The notes: generated by a model not told the origin, from the letters alone. Shown: positions 26,953 through 57,013, numbered from the stretch's first letter. The stretch is 62,000 nt of DNA from Octopus vulgaris (GCA_951406725.2 OX597815.1:189802001-189864000), one strand, 5' to 3'. Program-made: numbers and translations.

Positions 26953-27580
26953 TACTCACCGGTAAAATTTCCACTTATTTCTTATTTTTATTTTCCTAAA
27001 ATTTTCATTTCATCTTGCAACCTTTTCAATATTGAAAAGGTTGCAAGAGGCAATGAAAATTCTAAGAAAATAAAAATAAGAAATAAGTGGAAATTTTACC
27101 GGTGAGTGTGTTATATTATAAGGCACAAAAAGAAAATTACTCTCCCCAGACAACAGACTATGGTTTTTAAAATTTCAGATATGGCGCCTTCTTTCAAATG
27201 GATTTTTGAGTCTATACAAAACTTTATGATTCTTTATTAATTAGCTAAACAGCTTTTAATTCAAATTTGGTCTACATGGCATAAACTTTGTTTTCTTTTT
27301 CTTTCTTTTCCCTTTTTTTTTTCTTTTTTGAAGCACCAGAATGGCAACTGCAAATGGCAAACAACATTCGCAAGAGAGCAAATACTTGCTTGCAACAAAG
27401 TTAGAGAAGATTTTACTAATCAGAGACAACATTTTAATCCAATTTGTGAAAGGGGGGGAAATGTCTAGCAACGGGTAGTAGGCACAAAAAGAAAATGACT
27501 CTCCCCTGACACAACAGAATATGCTTCAACACACAAACTCATATAAAGAATCTTGCAAACTAAATCCAAAATCGAAATAT
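26953..27580 (+). mobile_element. Fold-back element F3 (U3-A8 hammerhead family), centre collapsed, arm tip duplicated around a ~320-bp insert
   Basis: Palindrome centred on ccttttcaat|attgaaaagg; ~42-bp arm tip at 27122-27162 and 27481-27523, followed by the family tail ..gcttcaacacacaaactcatataaagaatcttgcaaac. Confidence 0.75.
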
Positions 27581-27877
27581 AATACAAGAGCTGATCTAAA
27601 AGTATCAGGACTGGTGCTATAAAAAGAAAACTACAAAACATATCATTTTGGCATTTAATCTCCTTCGAAGTAGTCCCCTTCTGAAGCCATGCACATTATC
27701 CAGTGTTGCTCCCATTGGAGGAAGCATTCCTGGAACTCCTGTTTTGGGGATAATGAGCAACTGCATCCTCTTGGATTTCCTTAATGTCTTGAAATCTTTA
27801 TCCTTGCAAGAGAGATTTGATTTTTGAAAAGATTCTTGACCATAATAACCTTCAAGCCATGTCTCTTTCCTATTTCT

Positions 27878-28100
27878 TTACTACCCACAAGGGGCTAAAC
27901 ACAGAGAGAACAAACAAGGACAGACAAACGGATTAAGTTGATTATATCGACCCCAGTGCGTAACTGGTACTTATTCAATCGACCCCGAAAGAATGAAAGG
28001 CAAAGTCGACCTCGGCAGAATTTGAACTCAGAAGGTAGCGGCAGACGAAATACCACTAAGCATTTCGCCCGGTGTGCTAACGTTTCCACCAGCTCGACGC
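27878..28100 (-). mobile_element. SINE-B monomer (other copies ~22270-22400-, 30733-30965+, 45800-45930-, 54860-55030-, 58725-58920-)
   Basis: Reverse complement of gagctgg..gaaacgttagcac...gagttcaaattc.gccgaggtcgactttgcctttc...ccccttgtggg. Confidence 0.9.
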
Positions 28101-29261
28101 CTTCAAACCATGTGTCTTTCCATGTTCACATGCACACACACACACACACACACATATTTTCTCTGCCGTGGTCACTGATGGAACGTCTGTGGTTTGACCA
28201 CATTCTAAACACTTTACTTTGAAGCACTACTATAAACAATGGAAGTGAGCAGGAAGGTCATAACTTACTGTTCGTGCTCATCAGAGTTCAAGGTCAATCT
28301 GTGCCAAGTGGCTTTTCTCTGCATACTTTAGTTCCGTTACCTTGGCAACAGCCCCAATACTTTTTTGATCAGACCTCGTATTCTTAAATTCCATCACTAG
28401 AAATAAAATGCATTGCTGAGCAAGAAATATAACACTTAATAGCTAAGTCCACTTTTGGAAACTTATAAGGAGAAACAAATTATTGATTTTAGTCAGATAT
28501 ATTGCATAATTGATAGGCATTGTCATTATTTTGAAGTGGTACCTTAAAAGTACTCCATGGGGTACTGTAACCATAAGTATGTCATTAGTAGTATTGTCAG
28601 TGATTGCTAATTTCATAAGAATGTTTTATTTTCTTGGCTTCAGGCAATTTAAATGAACCAGAGAAATGTATAACGATTACTACACTTATATCAGGTTAGG
28701 CAACCGTGTATTTTCTTTGCGGTAGTACACCTGTTTCTGTCTTCATTCCTGATCATTCTCTCTCTCTGGCCAGGTAACCTTGAACTTCATCTACAGCAAG
28801 ACACCTGTATCTCTCTCATTATAACCGTTTCATCATCACCTCCTCCAATGCCTCCTCCCCTCTTAAAAGTTTTTGTCTTGCAGGTACTTGGTGACCCTGT
28901 CAGTATAGGTAACACATAAAAGCACCCTGTCCACTCTGCTGAGTGGTTAGTGTTAGGAAGGGCACCCAGCTGTAAAAACCTTGCCAAAACTGACCTCACC
29001 TGTGCTTGTGCCCCATAAAAAGCACCAAGTCCACTCTGCTGAGTGGTTGGTGTTCGGAAGGGCATCCAGCTGTAAAAATCCTGCCAAAACAGTCACAGAA
29101 GTCTGGTGCAGGCTTCAGTCTGGCTGGCTCTTGTGGTACTGTCCCACCCAAGCTAGCATGGAAACGGATGTTAAATGATGATGATGATGATGATAACCCA
29201 CCTTACCACAAAATCTTTGGCATCATACCTGCCTAACAATAGAAAAGTTATTCTTCACATA

Positions 29262-29475
29262 AGGCAGCAAGCTGGCCGAATCGTAAGCACGCTGGACAAA
29301 ATGCTTAGGTGTATTTCCCTCATCGTTACGTTCTGAGTTCAAATTCCACCGAGGTCGACTTTGCCTTTCATCTTTTCAGGGTCGATAAATTAAGTACCAG
29401 TTACGCACTGGGGTCGATGTAATCGACCATCCCCCTCTCCCAAATTTCAGGCCTAGTGCCAGTAGTAGAAAGGAT
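29262..29475 (+). mobile_element. SINE-B head with alternative tail B2 and ~14-bp TSD
   Basis: TSD attcttc(a/g)cataag on both sides; tail ccccctctcccaaatttcaggcctagtgcc..gtagaaaggatt. Confidence 0.85.
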
Positions 29476-31599
29476 TCTTCGCATAAGACACAGTGACATA
29501 ATAACAAACAATGCATGGAACTGGACTGCTCGTTAAATGTGGGAGAGGTTTGTTACTGCAGAATATGACTTTATCAATCCAACATTAAGGATCTCCAGAA
29601 ACATCGTTGCTTCCAAAAGGGGATTAAAAGTAATATTATAGCACAAGAACAAGCAAAGCAAAATAAACCAAATTCAGAATTTCATATATTAATTGCATTT
29701 TTCTGAATATTGGCAGAAACTTTAATATCAACATTAACTTATTTTGAAAAACCTTATATATATTGTTTCCTAATTGATTTTCTTGGAAGAAAATGTATGT
29801 AAGATTGGGATAAAAAGTTATTTTCAGTATTTGAAGGAATGGACTGTTGGCGATTAATGAGCCATTAAAAAACCATTAGCAAGACATTTCAAAAACCTGA
29901 TTTTGGTTTTATAGACAAATGCCTAGATAAGAGATAGTGAAGATTCTATATAATGTCTTGTCCAATCAATATTTTCTCCAATAACGATTTCATGCGAATG
30001 GAAAATAAAACAAATAAAAATGAAAGTTTGAAAGGAAAACAAATGCTAAAATAAAACAAGAAAAAAGAGAATGTTTCATTAGAGTCTTCCTTTGAGGAAT
30101 GTCTGCATAGGTAATATCACTCTTTCTGCTGAAATCTTTTGGTGCTTACTGATTGTGTTGAAATATTTTTTTACATTTATTTTTTTATATTATTTTATAT
30201 TATTTCATTTGTTTGTTTATTTATTCATTTTTTTCTTTTTTTAAAAATAGTCTTCTCTCAAATAGCTTCTAAAAGCCAAATTTTAAACTTTCGGTAGTTT
30301 TCACTTAAGGCAATATTTTATATATATACACACTTATTATGGAAACATATGCATGCATGTTTATATATACATGCATATATGTAGGTATATATCTGCATAT
30401 GTGTGTGTGTGTATATATATATATATATATATATATATATATATATATACATATATGCATATATATATATACTCATACATGTATATATATTTATATATAT
30501 AAATATATATTCATACATGTACTTATGTGCATGCATATATAAATATATATGTGTGTTTATATATATATATATGCTAGCATTGACCATGGACATTAAATAA
30601 TGATGATATACATATATATATGTATATATATGTATGTGTGTGTATGTATATATACATATATACATATATATATACATATATATATATAATACATATATAT
30701 ATATACACATATATACATATATATATATACATGAAGGCGGCGAGCTGGTAGAAACGTTAGCACGCCGGGCGAAATTCGTAGCCGTATTTCGTCTGTCGTT
30801 ACGTTCCGAGTTCAAATTCCGCCGAGGTCGACTTTGCCTTTCATCCTTTCGGGGTCGATAAATTAAGTACCAGTTACGCACTGGGGTCGATGTAGTCGAC
30901 TTAATCCCTTTGTCTGTCCTTGTTTGTCCCCTCTGTGTTTAGCCCCTTGTGGGTAGTAAAGAAATATATATATATATACATATATATATATATATACATA
31001 TATATATATATATATACATACACACATATATATACATACATATACATATACATGTGCTTACTATACGTGTATGTATTTATGTATGTATATATCTATCTTT
31101 CTACTATCTATTAACTATCTATCTATCATATATATATATATATATATACATTATATTATATTATATGCATATACTCATGTGATTGTGAGGAGATGCAGAG
31201 GCATAGACATGTAAAAGTAACAAACTTCTGCGAGGAGCAAAACACAACAATTGCTGCATGCTCAATGTGGTTACAACTGTCATTGGTTTGGTGTGATGGC
31301 TGCTTGGTTAACAGCAAAAGTATACTATCAAGCATTTCAAGTGAACTTTTCAGGTTGTTTCAGTACAGCTCAGCACTGCTGGACGACTGAAAGTACTGTT
31401 AAAAGTACGGAAAATGTGGACATTTCTGGCTGACAACCAATAGAGGGAGTGTCCCCTAGGGTAAGCCATATAGAAGTATGTGCATGCAAAAACTCACACA
31501 TATAGATTTATATATATATATATATATATATATATATATATATTGTGGTATTTTGTTCTGTACAGCATCCAGCTGTAAAAAAACCTTGTCAAAACTGAT

Positions 31600-56130: not shown

Positions 56131-56236
56131 TACGGAGATGTACTTGCATAGCAAGTGACCTGATCTGAGATCGTGTGCTGGAACGGTTTTTGTGTGTTTC
56201 TTAAATGGCTTATAAACACCTTCCACGCTGCAATTG
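56131..56236 (+). mobile_element. Deleted copy of fold-back F1
   Basis: Matches 10314-10366 joined to 10500-10554 at a GAA microhomology. Confidence 0.9.
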
Positions 56237-56364
56237 TTTATATATATATATATGTGCGTGTGTATGTGTGTGTGTGTGTGTATACAGGGTAAGAGTTATT
56301 AAAACAATAACTTTTACCAGGGGTCAGCATACGTAATAAAAGTCAGAAAAAATAAATATTTCTA

Positions 56365-56670
56365 TATAACAGTGTATAAAAAATTTACACACACAGAGAA
56401 GGCCACCATGTGGACTTCTAACATGCTGAAAAGAGCAGTCAAAACCCAGACTACGAAAACAAAGATTCTTCTTTAAGGCATGTTGCTTTTAAGTGAGCAG
56501 GATATCTAAATGAATAAAAGTCTCAGTTAAGCCTATACCCATTGAGTTTCTGCATTAATGATCAAATAATCTTTCTTTTCAGGGTTTGAGTTTTGACTGC
56601 CTTTTTCATCATGTAAGAAGTCCACATAGTGGCCTTCTCTCCGTGTATAAATTTTTCATACACTATTATA
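56365..56670. repeat. Fold-back with ~90-bp arms and ~130-bp spacer
   Basis: agagaaggccaccatgtggacttct..gcagtcaaaac / gttttgactgc..agaagtccacatagtggccttctct. Confidence 0.85.
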
Positions 56671-56681
56671 AATATATATAT

Positions 56682-57013
56682 TTCGTTTTGGTTTGCAAGA
56701 TTCTTTATATGAGTTCGTGTGTTGAAGCATATTCTGTTGTGTCTGGGGAGAGTCACTTTCTTTTTGTGCCTTATTATTCAACACACTCACCGGTAAAATT
56801 TCCACATATTCCTTATTTTTATTTTCTAAAATTTTCGTTGCATGTTGCAACCTTTTCAATAGTTTTGAGAGTCAAAACTATTGAAAAGGTTGCAAAACGC
56901 AACAAAAAATAATTTTAGAAAATAAAAATTAAGAAATAAGTGGAAATTTTACCAGTGAGTGTGTTAAATAATAAGGCACAAAAAGAAAGTGACTCTCCCC
57001 AGACACAACAGTA
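56682..57013. mobile_element. Most complete fold-back F3: ~140-bp arms, short loop, one-sided tail
   Basis: Centre caatagttttga-gag-tcaaaactattg; arms extend to tattctgttgtgtctgggg / ccccagacacaacagtata. Confidence 0.9.
56826..56862 (-). ncRNA. Minimal hammerhead motif, U3-A8 variant (best copy)
   Basis: cta-TTGAAAA-G-GTTGC-aacat-GCAAC-GAA-AATT-T-tag. Confidence 0.6.

Follow-up and report, generated by a model that had tools for sequence, protein, structure and literature searches.

Which kind of genetic element is the near-palindromic repeat that recurs in a 62,000-nt stretch of the Octopus vulgaris genome (GCA_951406725.2, OX597815.1:189802001-189864000; hereafter the window, always at its full length), and does the hammerhead-like motif in its arms belong to a ribozyme? 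The original prediction, made from the sequence alone, had described the repeat, designated F3, as a fold-back element carrying in both arms a variant hammerhead with U3-A8 in place of the tertiary pair C3-G8, and had suggested that both strands could yield self-cleaving RNA. We conclude with high confidence that F3 is the 3′-terminal module of a Penelope-like retroelement (PLE), inserted as inverted pairs. Its arms carry, at their inner ends, a 37-nt motif that, judged by its sequence, is probably the U3-A8 version of the minimal type I hammerhead in this PLE lineage.

Results

A search of both strands of the window with the pattern TTGAAAAGGTTGC-N5-GCAAC-GAAAATT, allowing up to three mismatches, returned five sites (Table 1), whereas none is expected according to 100 dinucleotide shuffles. 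All five sit within three copies of F3. Being arms of the same three repeat copies, they are not independent of each other and count as one family. The repeated U3-A8 motif was thus recovered at every site named in the original prediction, although the coordinates given there were 2-4 nt off and the decayed site on the minus strand of copy 1 had escaped notice. The description of the individual sites stood up as well: the right arm of copy 1 has the UUC site, the right arm of copy 3 is decayed, helix I is as short as had been stated, and the loop of stem II varies, reading AACAC, AACAT, AAAAC, AAGAG and AAGAT across the five arms. The statement that stem II is kept holds for three of the five arms; the remaining two have a G.U wobble and a mismatch, respectively, and no change is compensatory. 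The motif is still intact in two of the five arms. Production of self-cleaving RNA from both strands of one element found no support, because none of the three fold-backs combines intact motifs on its two strands: one arm of copy 2 lacks the motif, the plus-strand motif of copy 3 carries G12>A and an insertion, and helix II of the minus-strand motif of copy 1 is broken.

Table 1. Coordinates of the F3 copies, their hammerhead-like motifs and associated features in the window
Feature	Position	Strand	Description	Sequence
F3 copy 1	26955-27158		Head-to-head inverted pair of PLE 3′-end units (inverted repeat, blastn, alignment); left arm 26955-27030 (unit sense on -), outer end truncated; right arm 27031-27158 (unit sense on +)	
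Motif, copy 1 left arm	27000-27029	-	2 mismatches; decayed, helix II broken (3′ strand GAAAU, 1 mismatch plus wobble); no descriptor match	
Motif, copy 1 right arm	27030-27064	+	Pattern match 27032-27061, 1 mismatch (C11.1>U); G10.1.U11.1 wobble, H17 = C, helix I 2 bp; matches the loose minimal hammerhead descriptor, not the strict one	UA-UUGAAAA-G-GUUGC-aagag-GCAAU-GAA-AAUU-C-UA
Solo 5′-truncated unit 3′ end	27480-27580	+	~55-nt tail included	AGGCACAAAAAG...CGAAATAT
Left target-site duplication	44945-44956	+	12 bp	ATATTAACATAT
F3 copy 2	44957-45240		Long arm plus tail 44957-45103 (unit sense on -); short arm 45104-45240 (unit sense on +)	
Motif, copy 2 right arm	45111-45145	+	Pattern match 45113-45142, 0 mismatches; intact; helix I 2 bp; matches the strict descriptor	UA-UUGAAAA-G-GUUGC-aacac-GCAAC-GAA-AAUU-U-UA
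Right target-site duplication	45241-45252	+	12 bp; flanks copy 2	
Canonical C3-G8 minimal hammerhead motif	46347-46387	-	Within a ~177-nt unit, 46269-46445 (-)	GACAC-CUGAUGA-A-GGCUGG-N8-UCAGCC-GAA-ACGU-U-GUGUU
F3 copy 3	56680-57011		Most complete copy; long arm plus tail 56680-56868 (unit sense on -); short arm 56872-57011 (+)	
Motif, copy 3 left arm	56826-56862	-	Pattern match 56830-56859, 0 mismatches; intact; helix I 3 bp; matches the strict descriptor	CUA-UUGAAAA-G-GUUGC-aacau-GCAAC-GAA-AAUU-U-UAG
Motif, copy 3 right arm	56881-56917	+	Pattern match 56881-56910, 2 mismatches; decayed; G12>A (CpG transition) and 4-nt insertion between GAA and AAUU	

Read from the centre outwards, each F3 arm is one unit of ~135 nt, or ~190 nt with its tail, as judged by blastn and alignment. 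The unit has a G+C content of 27-30%, and the flanks of its insertions are TA-rich or consist of (TA)n. Copy 1 is an inverted repeat of 77 nt, 95% complementary and with a 0-nt spacer, in which TTCAAT and ATTGAA abut at the centre (nhmmer E 3e-39 and 1e-19). The long arm of copy 2 is without the inner ~60 nt, motif included, and in copy 3 (nhmmer E 1e-52 and 1e-36) the arms enclose a 3-nt centre, with (TA)n on both flanks. Paired arms are non-complementary at 5-11% of their positions. The left arms of copies 2 and 3 extend ~55 nt beyond the shared unit, and such a one-sided tail was seen in all three informative ends. The solo fragment is 93% identical to the left ends of copies 2 and 3 (nhmmer E 6.5e-21). 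The palindrome is internal, the outer ends (ATTTCGTTTTGG... and ...CAACAGAATAT) not being inverted copies of each other. Inner ends vary: both arms of copy 1 begin at ATTGAAAAGG, the right arm of copy 2 and both arms of copy 3 9 nt further in, at TCAAAAC. Finally, the 62-kb window contains the 12-mer ATATTAACATAT at just two positions, 44945 and 45241, which immediately bound copy 2. Because this duplication encloses the whole, both arms of copy 2, long and short, and its tail represent a single insertion event. Copy 1 is preceded, 60 nt before its truncated left end, by an inverted repeat at 26853-26897 whose 20-nt arms match perfectly across a 5-nt spacer (ATTAATTACTACACCTGTCC / GGACAGGTGTAGTAATTAAT). 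The solo fragment abuts the 3′ end of a mariner transposase C-terminal remnant (27590-27760, minus strand), which ends in ...EFQECFLQWEQHWIMCMASEGDYFEGD and a stop.

The identity of the element emerged from related loci. In Octopus sinensis (locus L009), an open reading frame (ORF) at 12157-12726 (-) matches the Pfam GIY-YIG model with 24.3 bits against a curated cutoff of 22.6; it contains a C-X4-C-XX-C linker and ends in the C-terminal tail ...LINETSPILNRKYT followed by a stop. A linker of this type in front of GIY-YIG has been described for Neptune and Nematis PLEs (PMC8557442). Searching with this endonuclease ORF yielded two Logan proteins, on a contig (L011) that also carries an F3-like unit: the endonuclease ORF occupies positions 501-839 and the unit, with 74% identity over 155 nt (E 7e-19), positions 1496-1646, ~650 nt downstream on the same strand. 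A second O. vulgaris locus (L007) shows the same arrangement. There, a remnant of the same endonuclease (6780-7246, 69% identical to L011) has an F3-like unit (8335-8544, nhmmer 2e-32) downstream of it on its own strand; the unit terminates the element, and two insertions of short interspersed elements (SINEs) separate it from the remnant. In L007 and L011, 0.6-1.1 kb thus separate the endonuclease stop codon from the downstream F3-like unit, with which the element ends.

The insertions themselves point in the same direction. Strong 5′ truncation, an adjacent inverted 5′-truncated copy, a tail at one end and microsatellite targets are hallmarks of PLE insertion (PMC8557442). F3 presents three head-to-head pairs with unequal arms, the one-sided tail, a solo 5′-truncated end, the 12-bp duplication and TA-rich targets, and the inverted partial copy lies upstream as in the PLEs described there. 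The tail of ~55 nt compares with 30-40 bp usually quoted for Neptune/Nematis-type PLEs. Placement of the element near this clade is tentative and rests on the linker and the GIY-YIG domain of the endonuclease remnant, as the reverse-transcriptase part was not recovered, all copies being 5′-truncated. Among 20 long ORFs of the window and the fetched loci, Pfam revealed no reverse transcriptase. Recently active Penelope families have been reported in O. vulgaris (PMC13282606). Within 188 kb of Octopus bimaculoides, O. sinensis and O. vulgaris sequence near mariner-derived genes, we found no close copy of F3; the diverged relative in L007 was the sole find. An ENA contig (L008) proved not to be octopus DNA. 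Collections of metagenomes, prokaryote genomes and viruses, scanned with exact patterns, gave no more copies and at most chance bacterial 20-mers, and a search of a protein collection with a spurious ORF spanning the F3 element gave no match.

Our first working idea had been a different one, namely that the repeat is a miniature inverted-repeat transposable element (MITE) or another fold-back DNA transposon, with the motif as a chance match carried in its arms. Like such elements, the copies are short (204-332 bp), A/T-rich, near-perfect palindromes present several times, and Rfam models of hairpin microRNA precursors align to them weakly, far below thresholds. The true ends, however, are asymmetric, all three informative ends have the one-sided extension, the inner ends of the arms vary, and a solo 5′-truncated 3′ end exists. 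DNA transposons do not usually duplicate a fixed 12 bp of their target. Moreover, the related units in the 3′ untranslated region (UTR) behind PLE endonuclease ORFs are single, non-palindromic copies. The idea was dropped for these reasons, and we consider it highly improbable. What had been called a fold-back element is an inverted PLE insertion.

Two neighbours of the PLE remnants deserve mention. The 5′-truncated PLE copy in L007 is apparently inserted into a putative remnant of Ty3/gypsy-type reverse transcriptase and RNase H, recognized by eye only (5300-6812 (+), ...YTKIDLADAYNQIRL..., ...LVHFDPDKPLGLACDA...). In L009, a single-exon gene for a 524-aa C2H2 zinc-finger protein with at least nine Pfam fingers (7361-8932 (-)) adjoins PLE and mariner remnants.

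Within the PLE 3′ module, the F3 motif has the layout CUA-UUGAAAA-G-GUUGC-N5-GCAAC-GAA-AAUU-U-UAG. U3-A8 takes the place of C3-G8, a single unpaired G follows A9, and G10.1-C11.1 closes a helix II of 5 bp. Next come the G12A13A14 triplet, a 4-nt palindrome A15.1-A-U-U16.1 that replaces the hairpin of helix III, and U or C at H17; helix I has 2-3 bp. The original prediction was supported in that the motif shows, at the sequence level, every signature element of a type I minimal hammerhead ribozyme (min-HHR), in a variant that has been published for PLEs (PMC4209133). According to the same report, PLE min-HHRs lack helix III and loop 3 and act as dimers. Their helix I is short, one nucleotide stays unpaired between A9 and 10.1, the pair G10.1-C11.1 is conserved, and segment 15.2-16.2 is palindromic. 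The U3-A8 covariant occurs in the Cercyon elements of Schistosoma, and Drosophila virilis has a variant with a helix I of 2 bp and two palindromic nucleotides inserted into helix III. F3 has three of the four emergent min-HHR features named there. The location of the motif in the PLE 3′ region, as seen in L007 and L011, is also that of PLE hammerheads (PMC8557442), whose minimal type I form is known from 3′ ends and pseudo-LTRs (long terminal repeats) of PLEs.

Individual positions were compared in seven sequences, the five window arms, L007 and L011. The 5′ core box of hammerheads has the consensus C3-U4-G5-A6-N7-G8-A9 (PMC7151607), and its U3-A8 form UUGAAAA is present in all seven, as is the unpaired G between A9 and 10.1. 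G12-A13-A14 follows helix II in four of the five window arms and in L007; the right arm of copy 3 reads AAA and L011 GAG. Four of the five window arms also have the palindromic AAUU (the 15.2-16.2 feature) and, in the context GAA-AAUU-U/C, A15.1-U16.1 with H17, which is disrupted in L011 and, by an inserted GG, in L007. This pair can form only between two molecules. Position 10.1-11.1 is G-C in three sequences and G.U in four; as the C sits in a CpG, the U at 11.1 may reflect decay or may be ancestral. In cis, only helix II (5 bp) and a helix I of 2-3 bp can form, with no helix III hairpin, and the predicted fold of isolated arms consists of helix II, alone or with a 3-bp closing helix. Since a missing helix III defines the departure of the min-HHRs, this places the F3 motif outside the canonical class but not outside the minimal subclass.

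A descriptor assembled from the min-HHR features in PMC4209133 matched the window four times, in three F3 arms and in the canonical motif at 46347-46387. Judged by dinucleotide-shuffled versions of the window, 0.004-0.010 matches per window are expected for a C3-G8 core and 0.0135-0.017 for a U3-A8 core; requiring the bulge and G10.1-C11.1 lowers the latter value to 0.0005. When the F3 unit itself was shuffled, 7 of 200,000 sequences contained any match. The descriptor found no match in 140 kb of other fetched loci, and the PLE 3′ UTRs of the two relatives, L007 and L011, held no other hammerhead-like candidate. A CUGAGGA candidate in L009 (9740-9773) was rejected as an unrelated chance match. 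Rfam hammerhead families gave no match at gathering score in the window and none at E <= 10 in the three F3 copies. This silence is uninformative on the minimal class, because the canonical min-HHR motif, which served as control, was equally undetected.

This canonical motif shares the layout of F3, with a bulge and a 4-nt palindromic helix III. The ~177-nt unit around it starts directly after a (CCA)n(AAT)n microsatellite. Members of the same family in O. sinensis L006 (22525-22706 (-) and 22956-23084 (+)) stand head-to-head, with one long and one short arm as in F3, and are decayed (G5>A; G12>A).

The longest invariant block in the five-way alignment of F3 and both diverged relatives is ATTGAAAAGGTTGCAA, 16 nt that run from position 2.1 through U3-A9, the bulge and the 5′ strand of helix II to two bases of the loop (27031-27046, 45112-45127, 56845-56860 (-) and 56880-56895 in the window; 8346-8361 in L007; ~1500-1515 in L011). 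The rest of the unit is on average 57% identical. By a rough calculation, invariance of this block at 65-74% overall identity would hardly be due to chance. The excess conservation of core and GAA that the original prediction had proposed to look for was not seen among the window arms, however: 13 of 185 motif sites (7.0%) differ from the consensus compared with 27 of 407 sites (6.6%) in the rest of the arm.

Several further observations weigh, together with this one, against a hammerhead. The changes are largely CpG transitions; they have altered C11.1 in the left and the right arm of copy 1 as well as the catalytic G12 of the right arm of copy 3. CpG decay is expected for dead retroelement copies. 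The covariation analysis suggested by the original prediction, limited to seven sequences and thus a small sample, revealed no compensatory change in any helix and no double-sided change in helix II. The named structure is paired at 88.6% compared with 86.7% in shuffles, and the covariation score of 0.224 against 0.182 in shuffles was reached by 53 of 500 of them, the seven sequences being too few for this statistic. The 3′ half of the motif is broken in both diverged relatives, in L007 by the GG inserted after A14 and in L011 by the reading GGAGU-GAG. As conservation across lineages is limited to the 5′ half, another role is possible. In three independent insertions the arms end on their inner side 0-9 nt upstream of U3 and ATTGAAAAGGTTGCAA rather than at the predicted cleavage site, so that the template RNAs were uncut. 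Our descriptor was composed after the motif had been seen.

Energetics add to these doubts. With a helix I of 2-3 bp and a helix III of four A-U pairs, the predicted hammerhead dimer of F3 is 7-16 kcal/mol less stable than the monomers. For the left arm of copy 3 the prediction is −7.6 kcal/mol for the dimer and −14.4 kcal/mol for two free monomers, and for the right arm of copy 2 −2.2 and −18 kcal/mol. The corresponding values of the canonical motif at 46347-46387 are −24.3 and −27.2 kcal/mol. RNA reading across both arms is predicted to form a near-perfect hairpin over the whole 288-nt element, with the core buried. Published min-HHRs are poor cleavers in vitro even with C3-G8 (PMC4209133). 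Given these low activities and the weak helices predicted here, any cleavage activity of the F3 motif is likely to be poor.

The main rival to the hammerhead reading is a role of the conserved 5′ block other than cleavage. The repeat would still be a PLE 3′ end, but the motif would never have been a ribozyme; ATTGAAAAGGTTGCAA and the hairpin would serve as promoter or transcription start, or as a site where reverse transcriptase stops or switches template, and the 3′ half would fit by chance in A/U-rich sequence. The restriction of invariance to the 5′ half, the clustering of the 5′ ends of the arms just upstream of the block, the lack of covariation and the weak dimer are all in line with such a role, and UUGAAAA and GAAAAUUUU are low-complexity strings in a unit of this base composition. 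On the other hand, a full descriptor match is rare at the unit's own composition, and bulge, G10.1-C11.1 and palindromic 15.2-16.2 segment are all emergent features of real PLE motifs (PMC4209133). The motif also sits where PLE hammerheads lie, the 3′ UTRs of the relatives offer no other candidate, and L007 retains core, helix II and GAA, 25 of 27 positions being identical to copy 1. We regard the non-ribozyme role as possible but, on present evidence, rather unlikely, and favour the minimal hammerhead as the probable identity of the motif.

The hairpins themselves invite another explanation. Folded as RNA, copy 3 is predicted to be extremely stable (−184 and −203 kcal/mol, z −28 and −31), and sub-threshold matches to long-hairpin microRNA families appear in Rfam at E <= 10, as might be expected if the fold-backs were hairpin RNA genes, i.e. 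precursors of microRNAs or small interfering RNAs or substrates of ADAR, with selection acting on the hairpin. Every Rfam match is far under its gathering score, however (e.g. 82.8 versus 195 bits). Substitutions and indels look neutral, with the mismatches between paired arms accompanied by 7% divergence from the family consensus, copy lengths differ, and the insertion mechanism already explains the palindrome. We consider hairpin RNA genes highly improbable.

The window around the F3 copies is rich in repeats and has a G+C content of 32-36%. It contains microsatellites, tRNA-like SINEs and mariner remnants, and its SINEs, mariner and other repeats are 80-92% identical to loci of O. bimaculoides, O. 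sinensis and O. vulgaris, which marks the window as Octopus DNA. A frameshifted mariner at 43035-43909 (-), 82-84% identical to O. sinensis and O. bimaculoides copies, has an N-terminal piece that matches proteins with a precomputed Pfam HTH_48 domain (PF17906). A 571-nt inverted duplicate pair (6695-7265 and 22653-23223, 94%) contains a transposase C-terminal piece that is mariner-like by eye (...HPPYSLDIAPLDFHLF...). The tRNA-like SINE forms short tandem arrays at 7598-8245 and 36180-36534 (218 nt x 3 and 184 nt x 1.9); it is abundant in O. sinensis and O. vulgaris loci (87-92% identity), with fewer matches in O. bimaculoides L005. A 125-nt tandem repeat in three copies that are 97% identical (5166-5543) resembles a SINE over part of its length and also holds a (TA)n/(CT)n tract. 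The G+C-rich island at 9785-10052 and 11254-11649 (42-44%) is built from long (TGG)n/(TGGTGGTAG)n arrays, imperfect and strongly GC-skewed, and supplies most of the longest ORFs of the window. Long GATA, ATAG and ATCT tetranucleotide arrays, with up to 107 copies and 93-98% purity, lie at 41119-41545, 44512-44682 and 52770-52903, and form the arms of the inverted pair 41395-41565 / 52733-52903.

Discussion

Among known systems, the F3 motif most resembles the metazoan PLE min-HHRs (PMC4209133), with which it shares type I topology, the lack of a helix III hairpin, a palindromic 15.x-16.x segment that points to action as a dimer, a short helix I, the bulge between A9 and 10.1, G10.1-C11.1 in three of the seven sequences, a terminal location in the PLE, closely spaced motif pairs on opposite strands and a predominance of truncated copies. 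It differs from these families in the all-A-U helix III, in the lack of family-level covariation among the seven sequences and in its cephalopod host; helix II has 5 bp compared with 7-8 bp in the min-HHR families of Schistosoma. The closest precedent is provided by the Cercyon PLEs of Schistosoma mansoni, in which U3-A8 likewise replaces C3-G8 in a min-HHR architecture, although phylum and PLE lineage differ. In the parts of PMC4209133 available to us, no activity of the Cercyon variant is reported. The Penelope hammerhead of D. virilis, in contrast, has the canonical C3-G8 and a helix II of 6 bp that contains an internal bulge, and its copies, stemming from a recent invasion, are almost identical (PMC4209133).

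The canonical type I hammerheads of Schistosoma Sm-alpha, newt satellite 2 and the animal non-LTR retrozymes have the conserved core boxes and the dimer dependence in common with F3, the latter because their helix III is short. Unlike F3, they possess a 6-bp helix I, a 4-bp helix II, tertiary contacts between loops and a short helix III hairpin. They are also organized as tandem arrays, whereas F3 occurs as dispersed inverted pairs and has no Rfam hammerhead match. The description of U3-A8 as a tolerated pair rests on natural covariation and biochemical work. Our literature search found no paper with both "hammerhead ribozyme" and "Octopus bimaculoides".

The structure of the copies also suggests how they may have arisen. 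Each fold-back is the product of one insertion event, in which a 5′-truncated copy was placed head-to-head with a shorter inverted copy. The centre of the palindrome would mark the 5′ end of the RNA template, where reverse transcriptase presumably snapped back on its own cDNA, and ATTGAAAAGGTTGCAA may mark this 5′ end or a template-switch point. If the motif is a min-HHR, its active site would be assembled only by two sense copies that pair through the palindrome, and cleavage after H17 (GAAAAUUU^UAG) would take place in multimeric transcripts or in transcripts of neighbouring elements. Read-through RNA in the fold-back context would be a long double-stranded hairpin rather than a ribozyme. 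The copies in the window are probably relics that decay neutrally, and nothing here points to a host function.

A more far-reaching scenario combines both roles of the conserved block: a cephalopod PLE lineage would possess a catalytically competent U3-A8 hammerhead and keep ATTGAAAAGGTTGCAA because the block serves twice, once as the core of the ribozyme and once as a signal, for the 5′ end or for template switching, from which the head-to-head insertions result. We consider this doubtful at present. If true, the lineage would be the second independent natural one with a swapped C3-G8 tertiary pair, after Cercyon of Schistosoma.

For genome annotation, octopus palindromes of this kind belong under Penelope-like insertions and not under MITEs. 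As the centres of the palindromes may map the 5′ ends of template RNAs, they bear on the poorly understood integration mechanism of PLEs. Should the motif cleave, it would extend the rare U3-A8 hammerhead core to molluscs and would provide a compact natural test of how far a hammerhead can be stripped, down to a 3-bp helix I, no helix III and a swapped tertiary pair.

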